Numbered from the stretch's first letter, positions 13,601 through 35,510 are shown. The stretch: 64,000 nucleotides of DNA from Orbicella franksi (GCA_964199315.1 OZ116702.1:5766001-5830000), one strand, 5' to 3'. The notes: generated from the letters alone by a model not told the origin. Program-made: numbers and translations.

Positions 13601-16600
13601 GCAGGAGAGTGTTGTTGAAATAGAGTATCTTGAGAAACATCCCACACCACGACCAGATAACTGTCTTCTTCATGATGACTGGATCAGCTCCATAGCCGTG
13701 TGCAAGAAGTGGTATGTTAACACAACAAACAGTTAAATTTAATCAGTGGATTCAATCCAATTTGATTTTATTGTTTTCTATGGACTTGCTGGCTTGTTTC
13801 AATGCTTCAATGACAAGAACTTACATCTTAACGCTACTTTTTTCTGTATTCTCTCAATTTTCTCTTTTTCATGATTTACACCTAAGACCTTAACTCAGCC
13901 TTTAATAGTCTTGCCAGACACCAGTTTGCATATTTTTAAGGAATTATTATTTAAAACTATATGCATGCATTAAATATAAAATTTATGTGATAAAAATTAT
14001 AAATTGGACCATTTTTTTATTATGCTATTTTACCAGTATTCTGAGTGGCAGCTATGATGGAAATGCATACATGTGGGATTTTAATGGTACTTTAGATTGT
14101 TGCTTAAAGTTTAGAAAGTGTTGAAATGTGTTGTAAAATGTACTTTTTGGCACAATCACAGCTACAATCCCGGCCAAAAGTAGTTGGGACACTTGAGCTG
14201 TATCACGTATCCCCCTTCCCCCCTAATCAATGTTGGAAAATATCGCGTTTTCTCCAACAAAAAAGGGAAAAATCACCTGATTATCAACATTGAAAGTGGG
14301 GGGAGGGGAGAACTTGCTTCATGTCCCAAGTCTTTTGTCTGGGATTGTAGATCAATTTTTTCCTTGTTGTATTTCACGTAGTTGTTATAAGATAAGAAAC
14401 CTTGCCATTAATTTACTTAACTTGGAGTGGAGGAGAAATTTTATTCAGTGTAGTATTCAGCATTGCTTAACCTGGTTTACGGTAAAATTTATTTCAAAAT
14501 TATTTCCTCTCTAGGAGGACATTGGCATACAAAACAAACATCAGGACATCAATATATACAAGAGCAACTACTTACCTTAGAACTGTCCCTCTGATACTAA
14601 TACTTAATATATAATTATAATTTATATTATATTAACTGATAATATGATAATATAATATGATAATATAAGTAGTGTCTGGCCAGCATCCCGTGCTGACCCA
14701 TGAAATATTTAGTATTGGTAAATTATATGTAAATCCACCTGCCGTCACTAGCAATGGTTTAGACTTATCAAACTTCTGTTCAAGGATTTGTGCATTTCCA
14801 TTGACAGGTACATGTCATTTGACATTTGATGGACACACGGCACCTGTGAAGAGTGTGCAGTGGATAGATGTGGGTAAGTTGCACCAAAGCTAATAGAGTG
14901 GTTTTTAATTGAGTGTCGAAAGTAATCAGGCAGTTACTTTGATTTTGATTTTGGTTTTGGTTTTACTACAGTTTGAGATTGGCTGAGTAGTTTAATTGGT
15001 AAGTAACTGGTATGGTTCTGGTTTTATGACACTTAATTGAAAACCATTCTAAAAGCTTTTAATTAGTGCTCGCATAATTGAATTATAGACTCTCACTACA
15101 GCCTCACTATTTTCGTAGATAGTGCTGCAGGCAAAAACTGTTTTTATTCTGATCATGCAGTGGACAAAAACTGATCACAAGCAAAGAGAGCGATTAGAGA
15201 GCTTGTTCCGGCCCTCCCACCCACCCCCCCCCCCCCCGACCCCCTCTCCAGCTTGCCCAGCCCACACATACACCACAATTCATCTCTTGATACTTTGCTA
15301 TGGGCTTTGTTGCTATAATAAAGCCAGTGTTTTTTGGTCAGCACATTGGACACCTTTCTTTTTTAATTGCATTTTTTTTTTCTTGCAGATGATGATGTTG
15401 GTATGTTTTTAACCTCATCTCAAGACCAATCCATTCGACTGAGTGAGGTACCAGCACTTCTTTCTAAAAGTGGCGTTAAAAGTAACTTGACTGTACAAAG
15501 CATCTGGTGATTAGTGTTAACTTGTTCTTACAAATGGAATGTCACGGTACTATTTCACTGATTTTCTACAGATCGCACTCAGGCCACTGTTTTCTGTTCA
15601 AATAAAAACTTCCCTTATATATTTTTGCTACCACTTTCTTGGCCTGAAGAACTTATTTCTTTAGCACAATACCTCCATTCCAACAAGGCAACACCAGGGA
15701 ATAAATAAATAAGTGTCAAAAACGAAGTGTTTAGCACTGCTTTGCTAATTGTGGTTTGAAATAAGCTTACCAATATTTTAAATTGAACAGAAACTGTTAA
15801 AAATCCAGACCAATGGGAGGCTGACCAGTTGGCTATAATTTACAAAGAGTTGGGACCACAAAACACAAATCCTTCCAGTGCCAGGAAGGAGGATTTGAAC
15901 TTGGGACCTCTGCATCCTAACCACTAGGCCATGCCACCTCTCCCTAACCATGTGCAGCAATACGACCCCCCCCCCCCTTCCCCCTGAGCATAACCAAATA
16001 GAAAACCATTTGCAATCGTATCCTGTCACCTTATGACTATCTTTTCATTCAGTACGTTTTTCTCAGTTTCCAGGAAAAAGCCTAAGCCCCAAGGTTGGAA
16101 TTCATGATAATGACAGTGAGGAAAACAAGATTTTGTTTATTTTCTTTCCTTGTTTAGTGGTCACGTAATAAGGGGAAGGCAGAGTGTATCCACATCTGTA
16201 AAGGGCACACACAGAGTGTTGATACAGTGGCTGTGGATTCATCTAAGACAAAGGTAAGTTGTAGCAGTTTTCAATTGAGTACAGTGCACACCCACATATA
16301 AGAACAAGTAGATTGAGAACATCAGACTGAAAGTTGCCCAATATAGCACCATATGCTTAAGAACTAATTCAACCTAATAAATGAAACAAGTTTTTATAGT
16401 AAACAATTAGATTATGAGCTCGAGATTTCTATCGCGTGATATGCGCCCTCGTCAACTATCACGCATAGAAATCGAGAGCGAATAATCTAATTGTTTTAGT
16501 ATAAATCTGCTAGTCGTTCAAAACTTTATCTAAATCCTCTTCACAGACACTTCGAAAACGCCAAGAGGCGACGGTCATTTTTTTGACAAGGACACACTGC

Positions 16601-19600
16601 TGCGCTACTCACTATCTATCACAGAATAGATAGTGAGTGGCAAAGCAAATCAGAGAACGGCATTCGTGATAGAACACTAGTAGATTCATACTAAAAAAAG
16701 AAAAAGGATTCCAGAAGGTGAAAGCATTCATATTAAAGTATAACCTAACGGTATTATATGTAGTAATAGTATATTTATGTCATATTTTTTTATTTGCAAT
16801 TTATTTTTAGTGTATTTCTAAGTAATAAAACATTGTATGTTTAATTACACCTCTAGTAATGTATAAAGTATTGTATTTCTGAAACAAATTTTAAGAACAT
16901 TTTAAGAACCCCGACGTCATAGGTTCTTACGTGTGGGTGTTTACTGTAATATGTCGAGCCAAAACCAAAACCAAACTAATCACTTTGGCCAACCACAAAG
17001 AACACAGACAATCCAGTGAACTAATTAAAACTAGAGGCAAGCTCGTGTAGCTGACGCAAAGCGCGGGAAAACATGCACGAGCGTTACGATTGGTTTTGAT
17101 TTTACTTCTGATTGGATGGAAAAGAGGCGCGAGATTTGTCAGCCAATCGTCTAGCGTAGTGATGCAAAGGGAAAGTAAATGCGAAACACTATCGACATTT
17201 AAGTTAAAAGCGCTCGAGGTTATAAGCTTCATCCATGGCATGTTTTAGCCGTTTTTTCTCCATTGTAGCTGATCCTACCAGTAGCGTATTGAGGTTCTCA
17301 ATGGACGTGCTGTAATCTCAATGACAGGGTATCAGTTAAATTTCAGCCCATTTTTTGGTTATCAGTGTTTTGCAAATCTCAGATATCACTTACAAAACGC
17401 ATCATCTCTATCAGTTATCAGTTTAACACCTTATACATCAGCTATCCGTTGAACCTCCATCTAGACCCTCGGTATTGACTTTTTTTACTGTTTAGTTTTG
17501 CAGTGGTTCTTGGGATAAAACTTTAAAAGTATGGTCAGCTGGTAAGTTGCATTGCATTCTGCCGATTGTTTCTGATAACTCTAAACATTTACCCTTAACA
17601 GTTTGTCATCCTTCAGTTCCTTTCTGAGTGAAGTTATGTGTATAGTCGCTAGACTGCGTGGCAATCATTCCGTTGTAAGGGCGCACGAGCAAGTCTTGTC
17701 GCCCGGAAATTGTGGCGAAAGCAAAAAATCGTCCATTTTTCTTCGCTTTTGACCCAATTTTCGCGCGGTCAGAATGCGGAAAAAACTCGTCATCCGTACG
17801 GGACCGCTTGCTACGCAGGCTATATAGTCGTTAATACGAGAACTGTTATTGGCCTGTAGCCGTTTCTTAGAATTATTTCTTCTTATTAGACGAACCTGAT
17901 GTCAACGTTTAGTGGCGTGGCGTCGTCAAGCTGGTTGAAAATGATACTTGCTTTTCTCTCGAGAAAATTATTTCCGGCTTTCTCTTACTGTGTACATGTG
18001 TGATAAACGGCGTATGTTTAGTTGCAGACCCTTTGGCGTCCGATGAAGCTGACGACAATGAGAAAGTGAAGAAGAAGCAAAAGACCGACAAAAGAAAAGC
18101 AACTACACGGGTAACATTTTCCTGCTTAGGCTGCCGTTTCAGTTTTTGTTGTTTCTGTTGCTGTTGTTTAGGTCGGGAGGGGTGGGGGCGTTCGCCTCTT
18201 TTACGCACATGATAATAGACAGATTCGGCTAACGTGTTTGCGTCTTTGTGTCCACCCAATTCAGACCTTGTGATGATTTATTTGGGAGGTTACAATTGTG
18301 CAATTTGCCACCTGCAACTGATTGCAGGGGAGTATGTGCAAACAGAACATTTGTAACCTCCAAAATGAATCATCACGTGGTCTGAATTGGGTGGCAAAAG
18401 GGACGTAAACTGTTTTAGTCGAATCCGTCTCTTGGCTCTTTTACTAGGAACATTTTCCATCAAATGATGCTACAGAACAAGGCATTACTGCGTCTACTGA
18501 ACGATTAAGCCCATGGTGCATTTGCGTTACTTGTCACGTACGTTGATCATGTAATTCGTCACCAGACCCCACTCATGACGCTATCTGGTCACGCAGAAGC
18601 TGTCTCCAGTGTACTGTGGATGGATCAAAGCACGGTGTGCAGTGCAGGCTGGGATCACACCATTCGAATTTGGGACGTCCAGGCTGGAGTCAACAAACAG
18701 ACGCTGGTATGTGTCTGTGGTGACAGTTCTTGACTTTCTAAAGATCAAATTACATAAGACTGAGGATCTTAGTAATTAAGATTCCTGATTGGAAATGTGC
18801 GCCTTTATCCACACGCTCGCACACCTTAGCTTTAGACAAGTCACCTAAGCAATAGAGCACTTTTTCCGCGTTTACACAGCCTCATCTAAACATGGGGTGG
18901 GTTCGGAGAATTCGAGTATTATCCAAACCTCCCTGGTGTTTAGATTAGGCTATGTAAACACAGAAAAAGTACTCTATTGTTTTTATTAAAAATTTTCCCG
19001 AAAATACGCGCGAATCTAAACGTCACAACCGTATTTACATACTTTCATCTAAACACACTTATCATACCGATGAGAGCGCGCGAAGTATCTCAGTTATTTT
19101 ACAGAAAATGATACAAAACTCTACCAAACAATGATACTCCGTCTGTCAGCTGTGTAACAAGGCTTTGTATATCTAACTACGATTTCATTCTTCTTTCTAT
19201 TCAGAGTGGCTCCAAAGTATTTTGCGACGTCTCTTTCTCTCCTCACTCAAGACTTCTAGTTTCTGGCAGCGCTGACAGACATGTTAGATTGTGGGACCCC
19301 AGAACTACTGGTTAGTCAAGAGCAACAAGATAACTTATTGTTAACCTTTATACCATGCCATAGAAGATACAGCCAATCAGAATACAGGAAAGCCGTTGTG
19401 TATTTGAGGGTATTTCACCCAGCCTTCCCTTAGAACAGTTAAGTTAATCAAAGCCTTTTCAGAGTCAACGGGCTTAAGAACCCGAACCTACGTCCGGTTT
19501 CACTGGCTTGTAACTGACTAGGGGCATTGCTACTTTCCCCACTCCGGATATAATGCTAAATCTCAGTCCATTTCATACTGGAGCCAGCGTGGCCGAGTGG

Positions 19601-20655
19601 TTAGAGCGCCGGATTTGAAATCCGTAGGTCCCGGGTTCAAATTCCGTTCTAACCGTTAGCTGACCGTTAGCTGATCGTTCCAATTCCGTTCTGACCGTTC
19701 TGACCGTTAGCTGATGTTGTTCTTGGTAGCCCCGAGTTCAACTTCTCGGCTGCGCTTGTAAATAGCCAACTGGTCTGCCTCCCGCCAGTTGGGATTCTTA
19801 ACCTAGTTATGTTTATTTGAATACTTATTTATCATTGTTTGTTTACATTGGTCCTGAAAAGCCCCAATGGGGAGTGGCCAATTACGTATACATTTTTTTT
19901 TACTACACGTCATTACAATCCCATCCCAACACAAATAACGAACTAACCAACAATTTGCTGTCATCCATTCATACTCTTGGAAAGAAAACTGTCTTTTGTC
20001 CAAGAACATAACATAAGTGTCCTGTTTCTTTAACTAGACATAATTTTGTACCGCTAATTTCCATCTTTATTGTTTCAACACTAACATTCGTTCTTTCAGA
20101 CGGATCCATTGTAAAAACAACGCTGACGTCACATCAAGGCTGGGTGTCCTCAGTAGCATGGTCACCAAGCAGCGAGTTCGAACTGATTTCTGGGTCGTAC
20201 GACACGACAGTTAAACTCTGGGACACACGGAGGTAAGTACCACTTAGGGTTTGGTGGCCAAGATAGAAAGCTTGAAGAGTGGTAAGGGGCTAGGTGGAGC
20301 AGGGGGGAGACAACCGCGCTTTATTTTGGCTCTCTCAGGTCACCTCAAACTAAAGGATTCTATTATCTTTCATCAGCTTAAGTGCACCGCTGTTCACAAT
20401 GACCCAACACCAGGATAAAGTTATGTGCGTAAACTGGGCTCTACAAACTGTAAGTTGACGAGAGGTCTCCATTAATTCTCTTACTTATACTTCGATTAGT
20501 TTGCCTTCAGTTAATGTTAAGTACCATTATTTGTATTTTCACAGTCTATGCTTAGTGGCGGAGCTGATAACCAGTTGATAATTTATGATATCTCCGGCGG
20601 AGGCTGGAGAACAAGGGATAGTGATATGGAATACCATTCTGCGGATACCACGTGA
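10667..20655 (+). CDS. WDR12: Ribosome biogenesis protein WDR12/Ytm1 (NLE/UBL domain + WD40 repeats), 15 exons, 448 aa
   Basis: Exons 10667-10722, 11619-11710, 12831-12952, 13605-13711, 14037-14086, 14808-14873, 15389-15447, 16158-16253, 17496-17541, 18022-18110, 18566-18706, 19205-19310, 20100-20232, 20377-20449, 20545-20655. Total 1347 nt with an open frame. Motifs include [96 protein letters not shown] near 20833. Confidence 0.95.
14894..15051. mobile_element. MITE, TAGAG.GGTTTT.AATTGAGTGTC family
   Basis: Matching TIRs at both ends. A related copy lies at about 16937-17217. Confidence 0.7.
15790..15945 (-). mobile_element. Degenerate tRNA-derived SINE
   Basis: On the minus strand, gtggcatggcctagtggttagg..ggttcaa-like A/B boxes, followed by a body similar to the SINE at 19580. 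Confidence 0.65.
16392..16505. repeat. Palindromic dispersed repeat
   Basis: aaacaattagatta..ctcga.atttctat.gcgtgata / tatcacgcatagaaatcgagagcgaataatctaattgttt inverted arms. Confidence 0.75.
16937..17217. mobile_element. MITE related to 14894-15051
   Basis: ccaaaaccaaa and ccaatc/gattgg subrepeats, with a right end ..acactatcgacatttaagttaaaagcgctc. Confidence 0.6.
17650..17822. mobile_element. MITE, TAG...CTA family
   Basis: TAGACTGCGT / ACGCAGGCTA termini. The 9-bp flanks are tatagtcgc / tatagtcgt. Confidence 0.8.
18252..18394. mobile_element. Hairpin MITE in WDR12 intron 10
   Basis: ccacccaattcagacc.tgtgatgatt.at.tggaggttacaa is matched by an inverted arm ttgtaacctcca.aatgaatcatcacgtggtctgaattgggtgg. 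Confidence 0.8.
19580..19890 (+). mobile_element. tRNA-derived SINE with internal tandem amplification
   Basis: A box TGGCCGAGTGG, B box GGTTCAAATTCC, and the body ..gagttcaacttctcggc..ttgtaaatagccaactgg..ccagttgggatt shared with the copy at 42790. Confidence 0.8.
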
Positions 20656-20939
20656 CCAGAAATAACAAAGATTTTTTGTCCAATATGTCATTTACGATTT
20701 TCGCCTCAGAGTTTTCATAAAAATGTGAGTTTAGCAATTCTAAGTGGTCCGAATTTATTGGATGACTTCTTGATTTTTCGGCTCAGATATTTATTATTGT
20801 CAGATCATTTAAATACTTTTTTTATTTCTTTAATAAAGAAGACTCTTCAGCACCACTAATTGTAGTGTTGGGTTTAAGCTCAAGCACTGGACCCGACTTA
20901 TCCGCATGCACGCGGTAAATGCTGATTTCGGAAAGGGGT

Positions 20940-21115
20940 TAGCCTGTCCCAGCCTCTCAGTCAGTGGGGACGATCGAAAAACCGTACAGGCTACGAGCGG
21001 AGCCTGGGAGAGAAAATGATAGGGCGCCCTTCCCTTCTTCTCCCAAATCCCGCTCGTAGCCTGCACGCGTTTTCGATCTTCCCCGCTCCACTGACCGAGA
21101 GCCTGGGACAGGCTA
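20940..21115. mobile_element. Hairpin MITE, TAG...CTA family, downstream of WDR12
   Basis: TAGCCTGTCCCAG..CTCTC.GTCAGTGG / CCACTGACCGAGAGCCTGGGACAGGCTA termini. The flanks are gaaaggggt / gaggggggt. Confidence 0.8.
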
Positions 21116-21808
21116 GAGGGGGGTTAGAGTTCAGTACAGCTTGCCTTCTACTCGATCGACAAATACGGCGTTAAAAAAATGAATAGTTACAGTGTAACAA
21201 TTTTACAAGCCTTATGGTAATTCCGACAGGCAAGGGACTATTACTTTTCCCTAGGAATGTGCAGTTACCACCTTTGTGGAATCAGCTGTATGTACACACT
21301 TGTTCCACAAATGCGTTAAAGCGTACGCGACAATGCCGATTAGGATCATGGGTAGTAATAGTTTCTCGTTGCTGGGTTGAGGTTCACAGTGTTTCAGCAA
21401 GAAGGAAGGAAAGCATGAATACACGTGTTTGTGCTGCTGCCTTCCACTGAAGCACCTCGAACTTCAAAGCAACTGAAACCACGATTACCCATAATACCTT
21501 TTGACATTGTTGAGTACGTTTTTGTAGGACTACTGACCTGTCTCAAAAGAGCTGTATTTCTCCAACCGAGGCGAAAGTTGTTATGGCGGAAACGCTTTTC
21601 TCCGAATAAAGCACTATCCACTGGATATGGATTTTAATTAGTGGTCGCAAATTCGAAATCGCTGTCGTGTTCGGTTATAACGATTGGGTTAAAGCACCAA
21701 ATAATCTTCGAAGGGGTTACTTAATGAAACGTCAATCGGGATGAAGAGGAAGCTGTATTATTTAGACAGTTTTCGGTTTAGGAATGTACTCGAATGGGAA
21801 TGTACTCT

Positions 21809-22108
21809 TTAGCCCGCGTAGCAAGTGTTCCCGAAAGACGTTTTTTTCGCATTCGGGCCCAGGCTCGATTTCCGCCGCTCACTCGAGTCCAGTCCACATT
21901 CGTCCCCGAGAAGAAAGTCACGGCCTCCTTTCTTGAACAGCGGTTATTTTGCCCGCGCGCAAAATTATAGCCAGAGCAAATCAATCGACGAAGCAGGGAA
22001 TGGTGGGGCGAGTAGAGGAACGCTTTCCCGCACCACTCCCTACATCGTCGATCCTTTGCTCTCGGAGAAATGTGGAAAAGGGTATGCGTAATGGAATGCT
22101 TGCTAGGC
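21809..22108. mobile_element. MITE, TAG...CTA family
   Basis: TAGCCCGCGTAGCAAG / CTTGCTAGGCAGGCTA termini. The TSD is not recognisable. Confidence 0.6.
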
Positions 22109-22760
22109 AGGCTAAACCCAACCTTGAAACCTCTTTTCATAATTCAGCTTTGTTTTCTTCTTTTCGCTGTTAAAAACACAGAAACGTCATTTGTAAGCAC
22201 CATTTTGGAGTCTAGGGGCATAAATTGTGAACTTTGGCATAACTTTTGGCATAATTTGACAAAATTAGGAGAAAGGGACGAAAAGCCAAGCTACCCAGGG
22301 CCCCAGTGGTCCTAGGACTTAAAGAGAGAAAAGTTCTATAGCTTTGGCTTCAAGTTCTAAAGTTTATTACAAAATTTGCGGTCTGAGCGCTTACATTAAC
22401 TTTGTGATTAACCAATAAAAAGTAACTACAAAACAAAACACAAGTTAGGTGTTACCTAGCAACACAAACGGGCTAGGTTACAATTCTTTCCGATTCTCTG
22501 TTCTAAACTGAGAAAGAAATGAAATCTCGGCCAACTTCTACAAAACACTTCTATTCATCCCAGCCACTTAACCAACATTTCATAGATCTGAATGAATTTT
22601 GCATGCCGTTTTTCCACTTCTGTCAGTTTTGACAATCGTTCTATTCAAACCAGTCGCAGAGGTGTCAGAAGTAAGGTGACCTAGCCTTCACGAGTTCGCC
22701 TGTTTAACAACCAACCTGATTTCATTTTAACGCTTTCAAGCTATTTTTCTATCTGCAGGT

Positions 22761-23326
22761 TGGCCTTCTTCGCAGCCGTTATTAGTTCCGTCACACAACG
22801 CTTGTTCATTATCACGGTTGTTGCAGAGGCGGATCCAGGAGAGGGGTTGAGGGGATAGCGATGACGTCGAAAGTTATATAAGTGCACAACCCCGCCCCTC
22901 CCCCTCCCCCTCCCCTCCCCCTCTCCCCGCACCCGCTTTCAGAAATTCCTGCATCCGCCCGTGTTGTAGCCCGCGAACGCAGACGTATTTCCGGCTGTCG
23001 CTTGTCTCCGCCGAAAATAAAGTCTGCAAACCCGAGCCAGGAAACGATTTCTGTGACGTAGGAATTTTAAGCCAATCACAGTTTAGCTCAAGTAGCCCCA
23101 GAACTACTGCGCGAGGTGTTCGCTTCGAGGAGCACTCGAGTTTCATTCTATCATGGAATCTGATTGACCAAGGAGAAACAAAAGCCATTACGTCACAGAA
23201 ATAGTTTCCTGGTTCGGGTTCACAGACATTCTTTTCGGCGGAGACAACCGACAGCCGGAAATACGTCTGCGTTCGCAGGCTACCCGTGTTGTGTGTCAAC
23301 CCAAATAACGGCTGCGTAGTAGGCTA
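22761..23326. mobile_element. Nested MITE pair (outer 22761-23326, inner 22967-23282)
   Basis: The outer termini GCAGCCGTTATT / AATAACGGCTGC are related to the element at 663-757, with flanks tctgcaggt / tgtggaggt. The inner long hairpin has a perfect 9-bp TSD, cccgtgttg. Confidence 0.88.
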
Positions 23327-23339
23327 TGTGGAGGTGTAC

Positions 23340-26300
23340 TTAGTATATATTAGTATAACTGGAAATTCCGTGACGTTTGATAATAGCCTTGAAGGTACGG
23401 ATCTGCATTGGACTGAGCTCCACGTTCATATCAGTTGCGGCGCGATGCACCCTCTTCTTCTTCGTCTTGTTTTCTTCCACGTTCTTCTTCGATTTGATAT
23501 TCCAGTGAAGGGGCTTTTTATCCTTCAGTAGCTGATTGGCAGACAAGTTCATCTCAGTCATGGACTCGATGTCAAAGTCGGTGAAGAGTTCCGCGAGTGA
23601 GATGTTGACAGGCTGCGAGAGCTTGGGATCTTCACCAGCCTCGTATTGATGTTCCACGCGGACCAACGCGGTGTCCTGCATCGTCTCCAGAGTCAGCAAA
23701 TGAACATTGGCGGGAAGCTGGCGGGTCATACCGCTGTGTAACGAGTTAAACTGGCTCGTCCACTTCTTGAAAGTGAGGCTATTAGGCGCAAATGCCATGA
23801 CGGGTTCCAGAAGGAGCTTCTCGCCAAGTTCGCGATGCAGGGCACCAGATGACTTGGGTGGCGCTAGAGTAAGGCACAGCTTCCCGCGGACAATCAAACC
23901 TTTACCGAGGATCCCCGTCTCGTTGAGCGGCTCACCCACCCCTCTCTTGTCATCTACGAGAAGCCGCCTGTGCAACATGATCTCCATGGAGCCGTCTTTC
24001 ATGCTGGACCCTCCCAGGGACCTGTCAGTCAGGACTGTCAGCTGTTTAGCACTGTCCTTGATGTACATTCGACTATTGACTGGATAATAATTTCCAGCAA
24101 CTGGCTCGGTGATGTCGAGTTTCCAGGTCGGTCGGTAATTCCTCTTGCGCTGTTGCATCTCTCTGCCGTTAGCATCGGTGTAGTAGAGTTGGTCGGACTT
24201 GATATCTGTGTCAAATCGGGTGATCACTTCTTTGCCCCACCCATCCCCCACAGGTATCGGTCCCACAGTGTACTCAAACTCAGCATGCCGCTGACCAGCG
24301 TACAGCCTGATCACCTGGCTGATGTACGGAGAGATCACCTGACGTACCTCCTGTACCAGGGGACCCTTGAAGATCTCCATCTTGCTGCCACTGGAGATGA
24401 GATTCACGCGGCTACTGTTAGGTCTGAAGATGTACGCGCCCGACGGCTGATGGCTGCTGTCGTTTCCCATGCTGCCGTTGTACCAGTAAAATGCCTGGCT
24501 CAATGCGGTGATGACTTTGGAAGTCAAATCAGTCATGCTTGTCAGATGGCCCGTGTCCTGAGAGAACGTAAGTTTAACAAGCTCGTTTTCGATGGAGACT
24601 TCACCGGAGTCTGTGTAAGCGGGCTTGGGAGCGGGCCGAAAGAACTTCTTTAGTGCGGACGGTGACTTGGCCTTTGTCGAGTTCACGAAGTAGGTGGCAA
24701 ACCCTAGAGCAGGGACTTTGGCCATGAAAACAAGCTCAAAAGATGAATTGCTTTGTGTCTGGTTCTGATTTTTACGCAGCTGTTTCGTAGCATCGGAAAG
24801 CGGGAGCACTTGCGTTTCAACAGCAGTACCTTGTGGACCAAACACAGCCATTGAGGCCATCGCGACTGGCAGGCGGACATACGGGGTTAGGTCTCGGGCA
24901 AGGGGATTGTAGACAGTCACAGTAAAGGATTTGTTCTCTTCAGTCAGAGTACAGACACTTATGTTGAGGTGGTCGCAAAATGTCAGTTCAGGAGGCTTGG
25001 TTTCAGGGTTTTTGGCCGTTAATTTTCCGAGCACATCACCAATTAACACCTGAAAAAAAAAACTGTTTTGTTAGGCCACTCGCCCAGTTGTGCAGTATTA
25101 TAGTATTAGAACTTAACAGACCGGCAGGATTAGGAACATTAGTTTCTAAAGCAGCTTCACTGATTTCTCAGAGTGGAAGTGGAAAGCGAACTTTATCACC
25201 AATTTTGAGGTTGATAAAACTAATTAACAGGCAAATTTCTCTAACACTGAAACGCTTCATTGTCTGAAATCGCTGAGAGCTACTGTGTAACTTACTTTAA
25301 TCAACAATTTACGACAGTTTACGACTAACTATGAGTAAAAAAGAAAACACTCCAGCCAGTAGTAGCCTTTCACATTTCATTACCAAGCTTAAAATTCACC
25401 ATCTTTATTCCCTTATCCCTACATTTTTTAGTTCTCTTAATCTTTCAGAAGTTATTCTACATCTCAATAGAAACACAGTCAGAAAAAATGTTTTCTACTT
25501 CCTTTAGAAAACACTGAAAGAAAAATAAAGAAAACTTACTCATTTATTTCATTTATTAAAATCTAAATTCTCCTTGCTCAGACTATCATTAGCAATTTCT
25601 AATACAAGTTGATAGAATCGATGAGGTATTAAGATGATTTCTGCAGAACATTTGAGTAATAATTGCAAAAATTAAGTTACCAAGAAAACCTCATGGTATT
25701 GTAATATTTTGAATACAGTTAAGAACTTATCAAGACTTACTGAAGCCGACCCTGTGAGGGAAAACTGAACTTGTAGTTATCCATATTTCAATTAAAACAG
25801 ACGTTTTGCATTAGTTAAAAACACAATAACACGCGCTTTAAGCATTCTTACGAGGTTTAACATTAACTTTCTCGAGAATGCTTGAGAATTTAATCACGGG
25901 GTCACTTAGAGAAATGAACTAAAGTGAGTTGTTTTCAATAGGAATAGCAATCCAAAAGTTACCGTGTTTTGAGTGGATTTTTAGTAAATAATTTTTGCAC
26001 TTATTGCTCGAACTTTCAGCAGACCATCTTAACTTTTCAAGCTCTAATGCAAAACATACTATGATTATCAGTTGAGTAAGGCACAACAGAACACACTTAA
26101 ATTATGGTTTTGCCAGGGGCAACTTTCCTCATTCCAATGGTAACAATATTGTTACCTGCAATTTCCCATGCTTTGCTGCCAATGATGTCAAAGGTCAACA
26201 AATTGCCACTGGGAAACAAAGCAAGTTGCCATGACAACAACACAGGTTAACCATTAAAATCTGGTCACCAAACTCTTGTCACACCTTACTCAACTAATAA

Positions 26301-29300
26301 TCGTAGTACAAATTCTCCTCACAGGTCTCCATTCATTTCTAATAGTACTAGTTGGGAGAACTTGACTATAATGTTTTAGACATTAGTTTTTCCATGTTGA
26401 TAAATGACTTCCTTAATGAAATAAATGCACATGCTCAAAATTCATACTTGTTTGATCACAATTGAATATGCATCTTTACTAAGAGTATAAGATTACCTGG
26501 CATTCTGTTGCACCAATGGCAAGTCGCTTAGCATAGTCATAAGCCACATGCTGCTTTGATGTACCAGTGACTGCATCATGGTGCTGGGCCACACCCACTG
26601 CTCTGCGTAGAGTATCTGAAGTTGGGCCATTCTTCTTTGCAGGACCACTTATCACCTCCAGCTGCTTACAGACCTACAAAGGGTCAGAGAAGGGGTTAAA
26701 CCTGAGATGACATCTCATTGCTTTTAATGCAAATTATTTACATGTAAATCAAACCTATGTTTAACCCATTGACAGCTGAAACTTTTTGGCAAAAATGCAT
26801 TTATTGGCAATTTTGGACATTTTCAGCCTGGATATGAGCCAAAGCAGCTCCAATCTACTCAAAAGGGCATTTTTAACATGACAGCATGCCCTTCTTTCCA
26901 CTAGTATTGTGTTTTATGACAGTTTTTCACTCTAACTGTGAGCATTTTTGTGCATATTTCAGGCTCAATTGACCCAATCACTCTAATCTGGGAATCACTG
27001 GAAAGATCTTTCCTTCCTGCAGAACTTGAGTATAAGTGATGCAAATATTTTGTTCAAAGGTGATGACATCTGAAGTGGAACAAAGGCCAATGCTTGCCAC
27101 ATCCACTTATGGCTAGCACAGGTGTTAACCATAGACCAACTAGAAGAAACACAATGTTTTCTTTTTCTGACCTCAACAGGGAATTTCCATCATCTGCAAA
27201 TAACTCTTTCACTTTCAACTTTTAGCATAGGCATGCAGGCATCTTTGGACTTTGGGGAGGGGAGGGCAGTGACCTTCTTACCCGAAAAATTTACACAATG
27301 CCTGAATGTGAGATTGTTTTAATCAGGATGCAAATGCACTCAAATTGTACGTAAAACAAAAACGTTCAAAATTCCCACATCTAACGAAACTGCAATTATA
27401 TTTCTGAAAATAGTTACATTCAAAGCTTGCATACTCAATCAATCAATCATATTCTATCAACAGCCTAAATACGGGTTAAATCTAAAACTTACCAAAAGAA
27501 AAAGTTTCAAAAAAAAACTAACTAGAAACTTTATTTTCGAGTTTTGGGAATCACGCCAACAGCATTAGTTCGTAATGTTTTATCTCAAGTGCCAATGCCT
27601 GAATCATTAGGGTTTTGCCCGCAAATCACATAATTTCTGTAGCTGGGGGGGGGGGGGGGGGCTACAGCCCCCCTCGCCTCCCCAGCTCGTACGCCCACAG
27701 CTGTATGGCTTTCAGTTTTGTCCCCAAACAATACTTACACCTACTTAAGGATTACCTGAAGCAAATTGTTGTTATATCTGACATATCGCTTGAGTGCTGG
27801 CCGGCTGGTGAAATAGCCAGTCCAATAACAGTGAGGACAATCTGCATATGGAAAGAAGTCATCAGTCTTCACTTCCCATGTCTGGTTAGCCTTGTGTAGA
27901 GCATCTAAGTACATGGTAGGTGTGGAGTAGAATGCATTCACTCGGCCATCCTACCAAAAAATATATGAATTAAATAGCATCAAACCTAACCTTCAAAAAG
28001 TAAAAAGTAACCTTGAGTAAAATAGGTGCATAAACATCAATACAAGTGGGAGACAGGTAACGGCCTGCAATGAACCAATGGTAAACTAGTCCAGATGAGA
28101 ATATTAGTATCAGTGAACATCAAAATAGAATTTTTACACATTTTTCAAGATATTTTTACAAGGGTTAGTAGACTTACATGTTTTTAGACCATATGAAATA
28201 AAATCCATGGCCCTCTTCGCTATAAAAAGGTCACAATACAAGACAAATCCTTTTGCTGTAAAGAGCTTAGGGAATTAAGATTATATAAGTTTCATTTTGC
28301 TTGTGTCAAGACCTCATTTTCCATTTCTTAACACAACTTATCATAATTTTCTGGGATAATTTTTGTAACACTGAAATTCCATGACCAGTTCAAATTCCAT
28401 TTCTAGAGTTCACACTTGAGGTGGTTTCACCAAAAAATGCTTGTAAGTAGGGCATGTTTATCCCATAAAACATTTGGCACGTACAAAGTGAGCAGTAACA
28501 ATCAAATATTTACATATATATCAGATTAATAGAGGAAAAAACAACAAACAAGTAAACAATAAACAAATAACAAAAGAGCAACCTGTACTTACGGCATTTA
28601 CATATTTAATAAGTTTATCCAAATTTTTGTACCACAGGTTAGCATTCTCATACATGAAATCAGAACCCATCGTCAAGAGGATGTGCTTAGTTTTGTAATG
28701 CAAGGCTTGCGCGTTTGTTATTGCCACGAACTTATCCACGGTTTCCTGAACATTGACATCAAAAAGCCTTGGGTCGTCTTGTATTGGGGGGTCTGTACAA
28801 AACTGATCGAAGCAAAATCCCTTGGGGGGATTGTAACCATTGTAAAGCACACCGGTGAAAATGTCAGAGGCTTGCCCAAGATTTCTGCTCCCTCTCCAGA
28901 CCAACTCCATTCTCTTTTGCTGGAGGCGAAGACTTTTGTCCGCGTAATCAATACGACCGAAGAAAAATCCATCGAATGACATCTGAGCAAATAGAGATGC
29001 TTGTTCGGACGAGTGACCAAATGGATCGATGTGCCAGGCTATGCGAGGTCTTGCATCCGATCCAAATGTCTCCTGTACGAAATTCAGTCCATAAGTCATT
29101 TGATCAATGATCGCATTGTAATGTGTTGCCGCCTCGTCGTTCATACACCATCCAGCGTTTATAAACTCCAGCCTTTTCTCTTTAACCAGTTCCTTCACTT
29201 CCGTACGCATGGCTTCGTTTTGCTCGTTCCACCAGCGCTCGAAGAACGCAATTTCCACGTAAATAAATCGCTTTTTCGGGTCTGCACTCAACTGAGGGAT

Positions 29301-29516
29301 AACAGAGTCTAAAATGTACTGCACTCCAGCGTGCTGAATGGAATTATTTGCGCCATAAAAATACTCGTCGACAGTTTTCAACCAGCCAACGTCATCATGA
29401 GTGTGGGCTACAAGATGGACCTGTAATTTATCTTCATCTTTCACTGCTTCTCCAAACTTGCTCTCAAAGACTGCACTCAGGCAGAGAAAGGTCACAAAAA
29501 AGAACAAAGTAGCCAT
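23340..29516 (-). CDS. MAN2B1: Lysosomal alpha-mannosidase (GH38), 4 exons, about 1001 aa
   Basis: Exons 28593-29516, 27756-27950, 26497-26673, 23340-25049. All are phase 0 with GT-AG boundaries, total 3006 nt. Signal peptide plus [20 protein letters not shown] (nucleophile), [64 protein letters not shown]. Minus-strand AATAAA at 22363-22368. Confidence 0.96.
26765..27124. mobile_element. piggyBac-like non-autonomous element in MAN2B1 intron 2
   Basis: TTAA on both sides, with CCC start and degenerate GG.G end. Confidence 0.5.
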
Positions 29517-29594
29517 TTTCTGCTGAAAAGAAAGGAAGCCACTACGTTCGTTTCACTTTCCTGAATAAAAGTTGTCGCTTCGGCTCCGCTGTGC

Positions 29595-29625
29595 TGTCGT
29601 CTGTCACGATAAAGTCACGAGATAT
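29595..29625 (-). promoter_or_regulatory. CLEAR/E-box-like GTCACG pair upstream of MAN2B1 exon 1
   Basis: GTCACG at 29603-29608 and 29614-29619, about 90-100 bp upstream of the ATG. These resemble the TFEB CLEAR consensus GTCACGTGAC. Confidence 0.45.
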
Positions 29626-30538
29626 TTTTGCCAAATTTGTTACAGGCGACATTACAGGCGACTACTCAGATCTAGAGAGAGCCTGGAACTACTAGTGTCC
29701 AGTATTCCGCGAGGTCAACGCCACGCGGTCGCAAGCGGTCGCCTCCATGAGAGATGGTTTACCAGAGACTCCGATCACAACAGTGGTTTGACCAAAATTT
29801 CCGTAGTTTGGAGACAAACTGGAGGTGATCGCTAGAAGAGATGTTCGCCAAGGGAAGTTTGACTGTAACAGAGAGAACGACAAATGCAGCCAAAAGTCTG
29901 AGAAATCAGAAACTGCAAGGGACTGCATGCGATAAACGCTGCCAACGTAAGTTCTACAAGAGATCTGATCGGTCAAAAAAATGTATGAAGTCTATTGTTG
30001 TTTGTCTTCAAAAGTCTGAGACTCTTTTCCAGCCGAGGGTGTTGCGGTGCGCCCGCGATCCTACCAAAATTCGACCGACAAGTTACTTAAATTTATATTC
30101 ATCTCACATTCAACAAGCGCAAATGGAATAATTGTTTTATCAAAAACGCCCTCAAAATGTAGAAAACTAAAATAAAAGCGCTCCAAAAGCTCACGCGAAC
30201 GCTTACCGTATTTGTAGAGCATGGTATAACTGCGGCATATTGGCTAAGCCAATGAAAACAGTCTTTAAGATCCAGTTTTGAACAAAACAATATTGCCTGT
30301 CTGCCGCAACAGCTGCGACCACTTTCAGGACTGTAACTACCTGTAACCACTGGTTAGGGTAGCGACTACTTCGGACAAAAATTAGGTAACGAGAAGCCTT
30401 AAAACCCTAGAAATTACAACAAATAGCTTCTTCCCACATCCGATGTTGTCGCGCAAAGCAGTACTTTCACCGTGGACGCACTGCAGTCTCTTCAAATGAC
30501 TAGTTGTTTTCTTAAATAATACGGTTTTGGTTTTACTG

Positions 30539-30720
30539 NNNNNNNNNNNNNNNNNNNNNNNNNNNNNNNNNNNNNNNNNNNNNNNNNNNNNNNNNNNNNN
30601 NNNNNNNNNNNNNNNNNNNNNNNNNNNNNNNNNNNNNNNNNNNNNNNNNNNNNNNNNNNNNNNNNNNNNNNNNNNNNNNNNNNNNNNNNNNNNNNNNNNN
30701 NNNNNNNNNNNNNNNNNNNN
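30539..30720. other. Assembly gap (182 N)
   Basis: Run of N directly visible between the two mannosidase exon-1 copies. Confidence 1.
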
Positions 30721-31350
30721 GCAATTAAAAGTTACACTCCCTACATGCAGGCTGACCTCTCGTAAAGGACCAGCTCCAGTAAGTCACCACAGGTTCGACC
30801 TCTCGGTTGTTCGGCTGCAGTAGATTGTCTGTAGTTTGCGAAACTTTGCCATTTTCGATTTCCTCCTCACGTGAATACCAAGTAAGCTCAAGGAAGTGTC
30901 TTCAAAAGCCAAACTTGATCTATTTTCGCTCAAATGTCAAGTTTACATGACAAACTTTTAAAGAAAACCATCTTGAAATCGAGTCACCATTGACGAAAGG
31001 TTATGGTATTGAAGATTTTATTGATTCTGTGGGTTGTTTCCTCGAAATTCTTGTTGAACCAACAGCGATCTTTTGAAGAGCTTATCAGGCTTATATTCAC
31101 AAGGATTTTGTTGGAATGATCTTGAACACGGACAAACAATCCCGGAACAAGAACCGTATTAGGACTTCAAAATGCTCAAAGCAAGACTTCACTCAGGCTT
31201 TGTTGCTCAATGGCAATATTTTACGAACTTTAAACTAATCGAGATACTCAAACAGGGCGACTTTTTTTTAGAAATAATCAGGTTTTCTCGCTTAAATTAA
31301 TCGCTTCGAGTTAGAGCTCTTAGAGAAAAAGACGCTTACTTAGATAACTC

Positions 31351-31423
31351 AAAGTGAAGAATGATCATCGCAGCAGATTTTCGAATTTAAGCAATTGGAA
31401 AGAAGAAGCCTGAAAAAATCAGC

Positions 31424-31455
<32 letters not shown>

Positions 31456-31591
31456 GATACCGGTGCGATGCTCTACCAACTGAGCTATGAAGCCACACAT
31501 TCCCCAAATTCGAAAATCTGCTGCGATGATCATTCTTCACTTTCATCTACTACCGCAGTTCATATATGAATTATTTCATATAAACTTCACA
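31351..31591 (-). mobile_element. tRNA(Thr-GGT)-like retroelement with inverted terminal duplication and 11-bp TSD
   Basis: tRNA-like head at 31423-31494 on the minus strand, a perfect 38-bp inverted repeat at 31351-31388 / 31506-31543, and the direct repeat ttagataactc at 31340-31350 and 31592-31602. Confidence 0.8.
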
Positions 31592-31838
31592 TTAGATAAC
31601 TCATTTAATTGGGTCATGGAATAGTACGGAATGCTCCAAATAGAAAGAAACTGAAACCACTCTACTGTGGATAATTTTATAACCTTTAACTGTTATACGA
31701 GATTGCAGTATCTACCTTGAAATCCAAACTCCTTAACTCCTTTAGCCTGGAGACATGGGTAACCTTAACTGAAAAGTAGGACTGACGCACCGTTTCTTGG
31801 AATGATGACTCCGTAGTATAAAGAGTTAACATTTAATG

Positions 31839-31952
31839 ATATAGCGGCTACCGAGAGCTTTCCTCTCCGGTCAGCCCCTTTGTATATGACAGGTTATAGC
31901 GGCTACGGAGAGATTTTCTCCCCGGTCAGCGCCCTGGTATATGACAAGTTAG
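31839..31952 (+). repeat. Tandem dimer of about 54 bp
   Basis: tatagcggctac.gagag.ttt.ctc.ccggtcagc.cc.t.gtatatgaca.gtta occurs twice. Confidence 0.75.
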
Positions 31953-32515
31953 TCCGGATCACATGAAAGGCTTGCTATCCCGGGTCACAAGGGAAACTAC
32001 ATGAAATGGACAGGAGATCGGTTTTCACGTGTGGATACGGATAGAGGCTGTAGAAAATGTTGCGGTAGATCTAGAAAATTCATTCATTCGTTCATTTCCA
32101 AAAGCACGCGAAGGTAACGAAACTGCGAGCGAGTAGGGAAAAATAAGGCGCAGGGGGAGGAGATTGGGGCAAAAAATTAAGGTCTACTTTCCTCCCCAAA
32201 TGCACTGCACCACCGCCCCGTTCCCCTTCTCCTCCTTTTTTTTTTCTCACCCCCTCCCCACTTCTCCCCATTTTATGTTCAGTCCAAGGCGCACTCGTTT
32301 GCTTCCTCGCTTTCTCGTTCTCCTTGCCTGGAAAATGAATATGAAACGTCTGCTACGCAGGCTATAGAAAAACAAGCATGCTAAAACTCTTTTCGTTACG
32401 TGACAAGTTAGTCACCATTAAGCAGCAATGAAAGGAGCCTGGGAGCCAGGAATCGCTCGAACCAGGGCAAAAAAAAATGCTTACGTCAAACTCTCATTCT
32501 GTGCATTATACTTAC

Positions 32516-33442
32516 TTCTTTCAGATATCTGATGAGCTTGTCCAAATTTTTGTACCACGTGTTGGCATTCTCGTACTGGAAATCCTCACCCATGGTCAAT
32601 ATGATGTGGTTTGTTTTATACTGCGATGCTTGTTTGCATGTTACATTCACAAATCTTTCTACAGTTTCTTTGACGTTGAGATCAAAGAGTCTCGGATCGT
32701 CTTGTACCGGGGTATCGTTGCATGATTGGTCGTAACAAAATCCACGCGGAGGGGCATAGACGTTATAGAGCACCCCTGCAAAAATATCAGAATCTTGTCC
32801 AAGATTTCTGCTCCCTCTCCAGACCAACTCCATTCTCTGTTGCTCGAGGCGAAGCTTTTTATCTGCATAGTCGATTCTACCCAGGAAGAAAGCATCGAAT
32901 GACATTTGAGCAAAGAGTGATGCTTGTTCGGACGAGTGACCAAATGGATCGATGTGCCAAGCTACGCGAGGTCTTGCATCCGATCCAAATGTCTCCTGCA
33001 CGAAATTCAGTCCATAAGTCATTTGATCAATGATCGCATTGTAATGTGTTGCCGCCTCGTCGTTCATACACCATCCAGCGTTAATAAACTCCAGCCTTTT
33101 CTCTTGAACCAGTTTCTTCACTTCCATACGCGAGGCTTCGTGTTGCTCGTTCCACCAGCGCTCGAAGAACGCAATTTCCACGTAAATAAATCGCTTTGTC
33201 CGGTCTGCACTCAACTGAGGGATAACCGAGTCCAAAATGTACTGCACTCCAGCGTGCTGAATGGAATTATTTGCGCCATAAAAATACTCGTCGACAGTTT
33301 TCAACCAGCCAACGTCATTATGAGTGTGGGGAACAAGATGGATCTGTAATTTATCTTCTTCCGACCTTGTTGAATCTTTGAGGTTGCATTCAAAGCCTGA
33401 ACCAAGCCAAATCAAGGCTGAAAAGAAAATCAAAGTAGACAT
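32516..33442 (-). CDS. MAN2B1: Second copy of alpha-mannosidase exon 1 (signal peptide + GH38 N-terminal catalytic domain, 309 codons); no downstream exons visible
   Basis: ATG at 33442 ([14 protein letters not shown]..), open frame with [23 protein letters not shown]. Ends at a phase-0 GTAAGT donor homologous to the donor at 28593. Roughly 80% aa identity to copy 1 by eye. Confidence 0.9.
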
Positions 33443-33489
33443 CGCTGTAACCAAGAGAATAATCTCTTGCTGTAACTTAATGTCATGTC

Positions 33490-33565
33490 CTGGTCACGAG
33501 ATCCAAAAAAAATAATGCAACGGTAACAATTTTCGTGACAGGTAGAGCAGAGCAGTCACGTAAGA
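33490..33565 (-). promoter_or_regulatory. CLEAR/E-box-like GTCACG triplet upstream of the second mannosidase exon 1
   Basis: GTCACG at 33493-33498, CGTGAC at 33534-33539 and GTCACG at 33555-33560, 50-120 bp upstream of the ATG. Confidence 0.45.
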
Positions 33566-35510
33566 AAGAGAAAACAAACCTCAGTCTCAGCTACTCTCAT
33601 CTACGACGTAACAGAAGTTAAATGTTGTCAATGTTTTATTGTTTGTCTTGTTTGTTGTTGTTGTTGTTGTTGTTGTTGGTCCGTATTCTTAGAGGTGCTG
33701 CAAGGATCACTGTAGGTGGTGAATGATAATTACCAGAGAGAATACGCCCCTTATCTAGTAGTCATTCTTTCAGATCGTTTCAAAGTTCAACCACTTTCGA
33801 CCTAGTCATCGCTTACCCGCCCACACCACCCTTGACCTCTTAGTTTATTGGTCTTGCATCTCGTTTTGCTAGTCAATTAATTTTGTTGCCTAAACAACAC
33901 AGTCTGTGATGTCTGTGTTTGATATCATAGGTATTAAATTACGAGTGTTTCCTTGGTGCTCAAGTGTTATCATGATTGTGAGTGACCTGCGCAAACAACC
34001 TCCTTTCAAACGGTCCTCGACTTTGTCCTGCTTTTATAGACCCTGTATGTAGGCTGGTCAATTCCCCCGGTCAATTCCTGCAGCCTTAAGAAACCCACAC
34101 ACTTGTTTTTGAATTTAACATTACACTGAACGGTAGAAATAGGCTCCGCTGTTGTTCTTTATTCCGTTGAAGATGATTGATATGAAAAATTGCATCGAAG
34201 AGCAAAAAATACATCAAAAGAGCAAATTCATTTCTATTGGTTCTACAACAGATTCGAGGACACAACAGCGAAATATTTTATCGATCATTTTTACTATTTT
34301 ATTGAGAAAAAAGACTCGTCCAGGACCTGGGTACTACAGAGGAAATTTTAAAACAACAAACCGAAATAAGTGATGGTAAAGATATTGGATGGCAATCATT
34401 ATAAGGGGTATAGAATAGTCCCGTTCAATTTTAAAGTGCTCGCAAAATTTGGCCTTTGCTTGAATTGCTCGCAAAAATTACATGAGTGCTCGCTCGCTCG
34501 AGTTCGCAAAATTTTTGCCACTGCTCGCATGCTCGGATTCTCGTTAAAATGTGCTTAATTACCGTATGGTAAAACTGGGAAACATGGGAGAAGCATGCAC
34601 ACGTTATGCTTCCTCGTTTTGGTGACGTTTTATTGAAACTGACGCGCGTAAATTCTTCGCGAAAGGCATCCCCAAAGGTAGAAAGTAATCTAGAGACATG
34701 AGAACATGTAGAGTATTACTATTACTATTCGACCTTCAGAGCTTGTCAGAGCTCAATCGGTTAGTCCTTGAAGCCTCCAAATAAAGCTTCCGTTGCTTTA
34801 AATCTTTTTAGTAACTCAGTTGAAAACCAGTTTGCCGATAATCGAAACCGAAACTCGAAATGCTTGTTAGACTAAATGCCACGTTGTTTACTCGGCATTT
34901 CCTGGGAATAATATAACCAAAAAAACCTTCCATGTTGCAAACTTCAAAGTCTGGTAAAATTTAGCTTCTTCTCGAGTAGTGTTCTCAACGTCAGATTAGA
35001 AAGCTTTAGATCTCCTTGAGCGTCCACCTAGTGTAACGCACCAATTTGATCGGGAATTCGAGGGTCACGGGTTTGTCAGTCGTAAGACTGTTGTGTGTTA
35101 CCCTCGTTAAACAAAGCTAATATATTTATTTATTTATTTATTTATTTATTTTATTTTACTGAAGCTCACGTGAAGCGAAGTGACGTAATTTGGCATTCAA
35201 CAGAGCAGTTGGCTGTACGCTGCTAGCATTGTTTGAACGGTGTCAGCCAGATTACTTGGTGCAAAATGTTTCCTTTTGATAAGAGAGAAATTCCGTCCAG
35301 CGGAAAATTTACGAACTGCTCGTTGCTCGCCATCTGTATTTTCTAAAGTGCTCGCTGCTCGCAAGACAAATTTGATCACAGCTCATGCTCGCAGAAATAA
35401 ACGCACTGCTCGCATGCTCGCGAATACTCGTAAAGGCCATTCGATTCATAGTTGCAGTACAAAAAAGAGTGTAACTTTTAGCTAAATGTCTTTACTTTAA
35501 TTTGAATTAA

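Follow-up and report, generated by a model that had tools for sequence, protein, structure and literature searches.

Two first exons and one set of constant exons in a lysosomal-type alpha-mannosidase gene of the coral Orbicella franksi

Introduction

A stretch of 64,000 nucleotides from the coral Orbicella franksi (GCA_964199315.1 OZ116702.1:5766001-5830000), referred to here in its full length as the window, carries one lysosomal-type alpha-mannosidase gene of glycoside hydrolase family 38 (GH38) on the minus strand. Two similar first exons, c2 and c1, lie in tandem upstream of three constant exons, and RNA contains splice junctions from each of them to exon 2. The locus is very probably a single gene with a small variable-first-exon array that gives two isoenzymes. 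Each of the two tandem cassettes would consist of a promoter motif and a first exon. Transcription of the c1 cassette would produce the major mRNA, encoding 1001 amino acids (aa), and transcription of the c2 cassette a minor mRNA, encoding 1002 aa, in which the c2 donor joins exon 2 over 4.6 kb and c1 is skipped. Each first exon would provide a signal peptide together with some 85% of the catalytic alpha/beta domain, in which the nucleophile Asp, the acid/base Asp and two of the Zn ligands are found; the one Zn ligand still missing and the C-terminal domains would come from the constant exons. Since the catalytic residues come with the first exon and the rest with the constant exons, the locus would make two isoenzymes. 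Gene conversion would hold the 5' halves of the two first exons nearly identical, with the 3' half, which carries the type-specific residues, staying diverged.

Structure of the locus

The gene model consists of the following elements, with positions counted from the first letter of the window.

33442..32516, minus strand: variable first exon c2, 927 nt, 309 codons, ATG at 33442, signal peptide and most of the GH38 N-terminal catalytic domain
32510..32515, minus strand: phase-0 splice donor GTAAGT of c2, present in the sequence and used in the RNA of runs X23, X3 and X10
29516..28593, minus strand: variable first exon c1 (major form), 924 nt, 308 codons, followed by GTAAGT in phase 0
27950..27756, minus strand: constant exon 2, 65 codons, acceptor for both c1 and c2
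26673..26497, minus strand: constant exon 3, 59 codons, with HHDA containing the fourth Zn-ligand His
25049..23340, minus strand: constant exon 4, 569 codons and the stop codon, with the Laman-like central domain, the GH38 C-terminal domain and a beta-sandwich

Neither c1 nor c2 contains a stop codon, and their proteins are 79% identical. Both match Pfam Glyco_hydro_38N (PF01074) far above the cut-off of 25 bits (c2, E 3e-73, 247 bits; c1, E 2.5e-76, 257 bits), and positions 233-270 of this Pfam domain fall beyond exon 1. Exon 4 matches PF07748 (165 bits), PF21260 (48 bits) and PF17677 (36 bits). The encoded protein begins with a hydrophobic, signal-like segment, as judged from sequence only, and family membership predicts acidic alpha-mannosidase activity and a lysosomal localisation. 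A tblastn search of the whole window with exons 2, 3 and 4 finds one copy of each (27950..27756, 26673..26497 and 25049..23343) and none between c2 and c1. The original prediction, made from the DNA of the window, had described a second intact exon 1 of 309 codons lying 3 kb upstream of the first, a phase-0 end at GTAAGT in both first exons, the lack of any exon 2-4 copy between them, and the Zn-ligand His of HHDA in exon 3; all four are borne out, with the second exon being c2 at 33442..32516, devoid of stops.

Coding sequence is divided among only four exons in the coral gene, of which the first (308 codons) and the last (569 codons) are very large. The exon-1 boundary, in which KYVNx is followed by GTAAGT, is kept across many cnidarian contigs, and the last exon is split in two in a distant contig (L008). 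Intron 2 contains a long homopolymer at 27645-27672 (C on the minus strand) with G-rich flanks.

Splice junctions in RNA

Two raw-read and two contig runs of RNA were aligned to 27700-33600. The junction from 32516 to 27950, which had been predicted to connect c2 with exon 2, was recovered from X23, X3 and X10, three runs that belong to three different studies. It is seen as a joint 27949/32515 that skips 4565 nt and has the ends CT..AC, corresponding to GT..AG on the minus strand. In X23, which consists of raw poly-A reads, five reads with four start points cross this junction, with a shorter side of 63 nt. A contig in X3 spans it at a depth of 14.3, and X10 has a contig of 1972 nt, with a depth of 136.8, that starts with 30 nt of c2 and continues through exon 2; X10 is a single-cell run, and of the two junctions it yielded an assembled contig for that of c2 alone. 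The c1 junction from 28593 to 27950 is found in 47 reads (41 starts) in X23 and at a depth of 102.8 in X3, so that the level of the c2 junction in bulk RNA is about 1/9 to 1/7 of that of c1 (approximately 10-14%). The exon-2 variants in X23 are all at about 100% of reads, indicating a single exon 2 common to both first exons. A loose read end at 27754 continues into exon 3, and RNA depth between c1 and c2 is zero outside repeats. That both first exons splice to common downstream exons, as had been proposed, is thus supported by the two junctions and the single exon-2 sequence, as well as by the layouts in other corals and a RefSeq model described below.

Two other transcript structures were considered and rejected. 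Both ATGs follow an acceptor-like ..YYYCAG, as would be expected of a shared non-coding leader exon, but RNA contigs run unbroken past both sites, and the leader exon is also disfavoured in that no joint upstream of either 5' untranslated region is listed in the RNA runs over 27700-33600. A tandem fusion transcript of c2 and c1 was discarded because no c2-to-c1 joint is listed over the same interval.

The same arrangement in other corals

A protein search with c2 returns hundreds of exon-1-only open reading frames (ORFs) from coral contigs, which sort by their 3' half into c2-type and c1-type. Full-length coral proteins came from a protein search seeded with the jellyfish protein P0416. The layout of the Orbicella locus recurs in related species, where the original prediction had directed attention. 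In L001 and L002, two gap-free long-read contigs, a c2-type exon is followed by a c1-type exon 5.3 and 3.4 kb downstream, respectively, and then by exons 2, 3 and 4; there is no exon 2-4 homology between the two first exons in either contig. L009, a Tara Pacific Pocillopora scaffold, carries a c2-type exon, a c1-type exon and then exons 2-4. Three first exons precede one constant exon set in L003+L004, at least two first exons are present in L005, and L007 has two first exons with a retrotransposon between them. The array is not universal, since L006, L008 and L010 are ordinary single-first-exon paralogues; L010, from the cluster of the Montipora model, has a single first exon of the c1 type.

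The exon joining seen in Orbicella RNA has a counterpart in existing annotation. The RefSeq protein 'lysosomal alpha-mannosidase-like isoform X1' of Pocillopora verrucosa (P0433, 1005 aa) maps to L009 through the upstream exon 1 (99.4%), exon 2 (100%), exon 3 and exon 4 (99.5%), with the downstream first exon skipped. Its junction ..KYVKQ/DGRVNAF.. is the counterpart of the Orbicella c2 junction.

Several points weigh against the reading of the Orbicella locus as one gene for two isoenzymes. Only the five raw reads in X23 cross the c2 junction, the remaining instances being k-mer contigs with a shorter side of 29-30 nt, and the RNA runs contain no full-length read joining the c2 5' end to the stop codon. 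Run X21 gave almost no matches to the region. Many fixed differences separate X23 from the reference, indicating that it comes from another genotype. Furthermore, the c2-type exon stands as an independent RefSeq protein of 328-340 aa in Pocillopora damicornis (XP_027051348.1) and in two Montipora species, M. capricornis (XP_068743472.1) and M. foliosa (XP_068670674.1). For the truncated RefSeq models P0171 and P0179, which have no contig on record, the cluster members P0392 and P0404 stood in.

These exon-1-only models might mean that c2 mainly yields a protein of about 320 aa, a truncated N-domain that stands alone and arises by reading into the intron, and X3 includes a contig of depth 4.3 that runs from the intron into c2 and represents unspliced RNA. 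In the same run, however, spliced c2 RNA exceeds unspliced c2 RNA (14.3 vs 4.3). Exon 1 alone is devoid of the fourth Zn-ligand His and the end of the GH38 N domain, the tails read through into the intron are not conserved between species, and the P. verrucosa RefSeq protein has the c2-type exon joined to exons 2-4. A truncated protein as the main product of c2 is therefore considered very improbable. The stand-alone models rather indicate that annotation pipelines sometimes miss the junction.

Some of these contigs have features of their own. The retrotransposon in L007 (14365-18350), with integrase and reverse-transcriptase ORFs, stretches the skipped intron to about 8 kb. In L003+L004 (ERZ25067872 ctg20810, merged 10079-28477), the first-exon types are A-E-Q, F-G-A and N-S-M at the type-specific positions; the first two first exons are near-identical in the 3' half (dS 0.09, where dS is synonymous divergence), with a ratio of non-synonymous to synonymous divergence (omega) of 0.71, which suggests a recent duplicate that may be undergoing relaxed or diversifying change. 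Complete tandem LAMAN-like paralogues adjoin the variable-exon gene in L006 and L005 (ERZ25067872 ctg21019, the same coral sample), indicating that the family grows both by whole-gene and by first-exon duplication. Upstream of the Pocillopora locus, L009 has a weak FGF Pfam match at 1892-2059.

The skipped intron and the assembly gap

27951..32515, minus strand: intron spliced out of isoform 2, 4565 nt long in the assembly, holding the N gap, a tRNA-Thr-like repeat, and c1 with its promoter

The N gap spans 30539-30720, in non-coding sequence downstream of the c2 donor and ahead of the c1 promoter, and hence interrupts no exon or reading frame. On either side of it, the window is colinear with gap-free contigs from related corals. 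In principle, the gap or a misassembly might hide exons 2-4 of a full second paralogue, of which c2 would be exon 1; complete tandem and head-to-head paralogues do exist in other cnidarian contigs (L006 and L008). Against this, c2 is spliced to exon 2 at 27950 and reads show one exon-2 sequence. In the gap-free contigs of the relatives, nothing homologous to exons 2-4 lies between c2 and c1, and the stretch of L002 that corresponds to the gap position measures about 1.7 kb (638 nt including the N run in the window), less than the 2.1 kb that the coding sequence of exons 2-4 would need. A hidden paralogue, rejected on the basis of the c2 junction and the colinear gap-free relatives, is extremely improbable.

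RNA depth is zero on both sides of the gap, except for an isolated blip of contig depth at 30064-30260 (74 in X3 and 252 in X10), which lies past the gap towards the c1 promoter and includes a loose end at 30153. The raw reads of X23 do not show this blip, which thus probably stems from a repeat with expression at other sites. On the minus strand, at 31422-31494, there is a tRNA-Thr(GGT)-like sequence with inverted repeats on its flanks. In the surrounding region, 31340-31600, RNA depth reaches about 18,000 in X10, with 'opposite strands' joints and many loose ends. This region looks like a tRNA-derived foldback repeat, similar to a short interspersed nuclear element (SINE) or a miniature inverted-repeat transposable element (MITE), with many expressed copies.

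Divergence, gene conversion and selection

DNA homology between the two first exons is confined to 33361..32509 of c2 and 29438..28586 of c1, an ungapped block of 853 nt with 85% identity, which stops 7 nt beyond the donor. The flanks and the signal-peptide codons of c1 and c2 do not align. The block is a mosaic: its first 469 nt are 4.7% divergent and its last 384 nt 26.8% divergent, with a change point at 32892 in c2 and 28969 in c1, for which the observed statistic was reached in 0 of 2000 permutations.

32893..33361, minus strand: gene-conversion tract, c2 side, which pairs with 28970-29438 of c1 and is 4.7% different as against 26.8% in the rest of the block

Between c1 and c2, dS is 0.04-0.09 in codons 41-160 and ranges from 0.9 to saturated in codons 161-309, where omega is about 0.04-0.13. 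This pattern of divergence points to an old duplication with purifying selection on both copies and to a 5' half recently homogenised by gene conversion. In trees of the 3'-half DNA, the c2 and c1 orthologues are apart, with 100/99 support each, and in the 5'-half tree all six sequences fall into one unresolved clade. As read from these trees, the merging of the 5' halves is the signature of concerted evolution. In a protein tree of 74 3' halves, all c2-type exons form one clade with 100/98 support, which takes in the RefSeq models of Pocillopora damicornis and Montipora capricornis; by this tree, the c2 exon type is ancient.

The near-identity of the 5' halves (about 95%) could also be taken as a sign that the tandem copies are two haplotypes of one exon, assembled on either side of the gap. 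Duplicated haplotigs beside N gaps are frequent in scaffolded assemblies. The 3' halves, however, are 26.8% different and reach a dS of 1.5-1.7, and neither the signal peptides nor the flanks can be aligned. At least five independent assemblies, among them gap-free long-read contigs, carry the two types in tandem, and RNA shows them as distinct transcripts. Such an artefact has almost no probability left, being ruled out by the divergence of the 3' halves and by the independent assemblies.

Selection bears on another possibility, that c2 is a non-functional partial duplicate and that its splicing to exon 2 is transcriptional noise, which would accord with the minor level of its junction, about 10-14% of c1 in bulk RNA. 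Between pairs of c2 orthologues, the 3' half has a dS of 0.20-0.34 with an omega of 0.07-0.08, equal to that of c1 (0.06-0.08 between c1 orthologue pairs). Between c2 and the Pocillopora c2-type exon, synonymous sites are saturated and non-synonymous divergence (dN) is 0.098. The copy L007_up, in which the motif anchor was missed, is excluded from these divergence figures. The ATG, the signal-like N-terminus, the open frame and the phase-0 GT donor are kept in every copy examined across species, type-specific residues are kept across genera, and the upstream motif is conserved. A dead duplicate is thus very unlikely, and it was rejected on omega and deep conservation.

Active-site residues of the two first exons

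In bovine and human numbering, the Zn ligands of lysosomal alpha-mannosidase include His72, Asp74 and His446, and the active-site Asp is Asp196 (PMC11600758). The acid/base Asp is the equivalent of Asp341 of Drosophila Golgi alpha-mannosidase II (dGMII) (PMC13204073). When aligned to bovine LAMAN (1O7D) and dGMII (1HTY), c2 has the Zn ligands H41 and D43, the nucleophile D165 and the acid/base D287, and c1 has H40, D42, D164 and D286 at the corresponding positions. Residues 25-306 of c2 align to chain A of 1o7d with an E-value of 1e-122; c2 matches 1hty (GMII) with 1.6e-34 and 7ufs with 4e-5. By these values it stands with the lysosomal GH38 enzymes and further from the Golgi and cytosolic ones.

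Around this common core, the two exons differ at 37 fixed positions (three c2 vs three c1 orthologues), of which 12 are in the signal region and 24 in residues 184-309. The type-specific residues are N42, A230, E286 and Q289 in c2 and D41, N229, S285 and M288 in c1. The four c1 residues are the canonical lysosomal ones; D41, N229 and S285 are equivalent to bovine D73, N262 and S318, where c2 has N42, A230 and E286. The Zn-ligand motif accordingly reads HTHND in c2 and HTHDD in c1 and the bovine enzyme. Q289 of c2 and M288 of c1 lie two residues past the acid/base Asp. A third exon type, with F/M-G-A at the type-specific positions, is found in other species. In addition, c2 has two extra N-glycosylation sequons compared with c1. 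Bovine N262 and S318 form the neutral counterpart of the Asp270-Asp340 dyad of dGMII, a non-conserved pocket that has been exploited for inhibitor selectivity (PMC13204073). The exchange of A230/E286 for N229/S285 in this pocket, together with the neighbouring changes, makes a difference in specificity plausible, and from the aligned residues the isoenzymes may be supposed to differ in substrate or inhibitor specificity.

Promoter-proximal elements

33476..33560, minus strand: c2 promoter-proximal region with three CGTGAC-type motifs (33493-33498, 33534-33539 and 33555-33560) and the conserved element GATCTCGTGACCAGGACATGAC
29600..29623, minus strand: c1 promoter-proximal motif ATCTCGTGACTTTATCGTGAC with CGTGAC at 29603-29608 and 29614-29619

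In most of the species examined, each ATG is preceded at a distance of 45-110 nt by an element TCTCGTGAC...TGAC. Its conserved form is ATATCTCGTGACTTTATCGTGAC for c1-type exons, kept in eight loci, and GATCTCGTGACCAGGACATGAC for c2-type exons, kept in L001, M34 and L009. CGTGAC is enriched in the two promoter-proximal regions, which hold, in about 260 nt, 5 of the 33 matches in the 64 kb of the window. RNA cover extends to 33484 for c2 (X3) and to 29592-29602 for c1, starting just downstream of the upstream element for both first exons. The conserved motif and the start of RNA cover suggest that c1 and c2 may each have their own promoter, and they fit a duplicated promoter-plus-exon cassette. 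One might speculate that CGTGAC is related to E-box sites or to sites of the coordinated lysosomal expression and regulation (CLEAR) type. In L002 (about 9900-10000), the c2-type element (TCTCGTGACC..CATGAC) is partly deleted, leaving ..AGATATGAC..; the exon there is intact and constrained.

Relation to known systems and significance

Clusters of variable first exons have been described for UGT1A, GCNT2 (IGnT), UGT2A and the clustered protocadherins (Li & Wu 2007, PMC1885805). The variable/constant organisation of Ugt1, Gcnt2 and Ugt2a has been termed vertebrate-specific, and predominant gene conversion has been found only in the Pcdh clusters (PMC1885805). The coral mannosidase locus is a member of this class: its similar first exons stand in tandem, and every one of them is spliced on its own to a single constant exon set, as in the UGT1, GCNT2 and PCDH clusters. 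As in UGT1 and GCNT2, the coral variable exon comprises an N-terminal signal or anchor and a large part of the functional domain; in vertebrates the variable exons of UGT1 encode the acceptor-binding domain and those of GCNT2 the larger part of the catalytic domain. Lineages vary in how many variable exons they have, as they do for the vertebrate clusters, with two here and three in another coral. Gene conversion between neighbouring variable exons is shared with the Pcdh clusters, although in the coral it is restricted to the 5' half of the exon. The coral array further differs from the vertebrate clusters in its cnidarian host, in its enzyme, which is a GH38 glycoside hydrolase and not a glycosyltransferase or cadherin, in its small size (2-3 exons), and in that the swapped exon holds the catalytic nucleophile and the acid/base.

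Compared with MAN2B1 (PDB 1O7D), the coral enzyme has the Zn motif, the WHIDPFGH nucleophile, the MGxDFxY acid/base motif, HHDA and the C-terminal domains; c1 keeps the bovine residues at D73, N262 and S318, and c2 departs from them with N42, A230 and E286. A further difference from MAN2B1 is the small number of exons, four, in the coral gene. In HxHND, c2 resembles dGMII (HSHNDPGW; PDB 1HTY/1QWN), and with dGMII and jack-bean mannosidase it shares an acidic residue right before the acid/base Asp (GEDF vs GDDF). Unlike GMII, however, c2 is nearer to the lysosomal enzymes (E 1e-122 vs 1e-34), is without the GMII-specific insertions and has Ala at the D270 equivalent. The P. verrucosa isoform X1 in RefSeq has the same exon joining, but that model was generated automatically and does not amount to a description of the phenomenon. 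No paper was found on alternative first exons of lysosomal alpha-mannosidase/MAN2B1 or of cnidarian mannosidases, and the arrangement is undescribed in the literature found. What is new here is the presence of variable first exons in a cnidarian glycoside hydrolase, with catalytic residues within the swapped exon.

Beyond the single locus, there is some chance, rather under one half, that reef corals in general possess a UGT1A-like array predating the Pocillopora/Montipora split. Such an array would have two or three cassettes with different specificity pockets (Asn/Ser, Ala/Glu and Phe-or-Met/Gly at bovine N262/S318) and a catalytic core equalised by gene conversion.

Lysosomal alpha-mannosidase has been flagged as one of the bleaching-associated genes in Aiptasia (PMC6643889) and also in selective sweeps in Acropora tenuis (PMC7695477), and mannose-type glycans influence symbiont uptake (bioRxiv 10.1101/820894). 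Counting of reads per gene would overlook an isoform switch at the mannosidase locus. Several RefSeq coral models, in which the upstream exon is a truncated stand-alone gene, could be corrected. Swapping of homologous first exons is a compact route to isoenzymes from one locus. As c1 and c2 differ at the pocket for lysosomal-versus-Golgi inhibitor selectivity (PMC13204073), the coral pair constitutes a natural experiment on GH38 specificity. If the proposed array is real, the isoenzymes might differ in glycan specificity, pH optimum or sensitivity to inhibitors, and each might serve in other cells than the next, with digestive and symbiont-hosting cells as examples.

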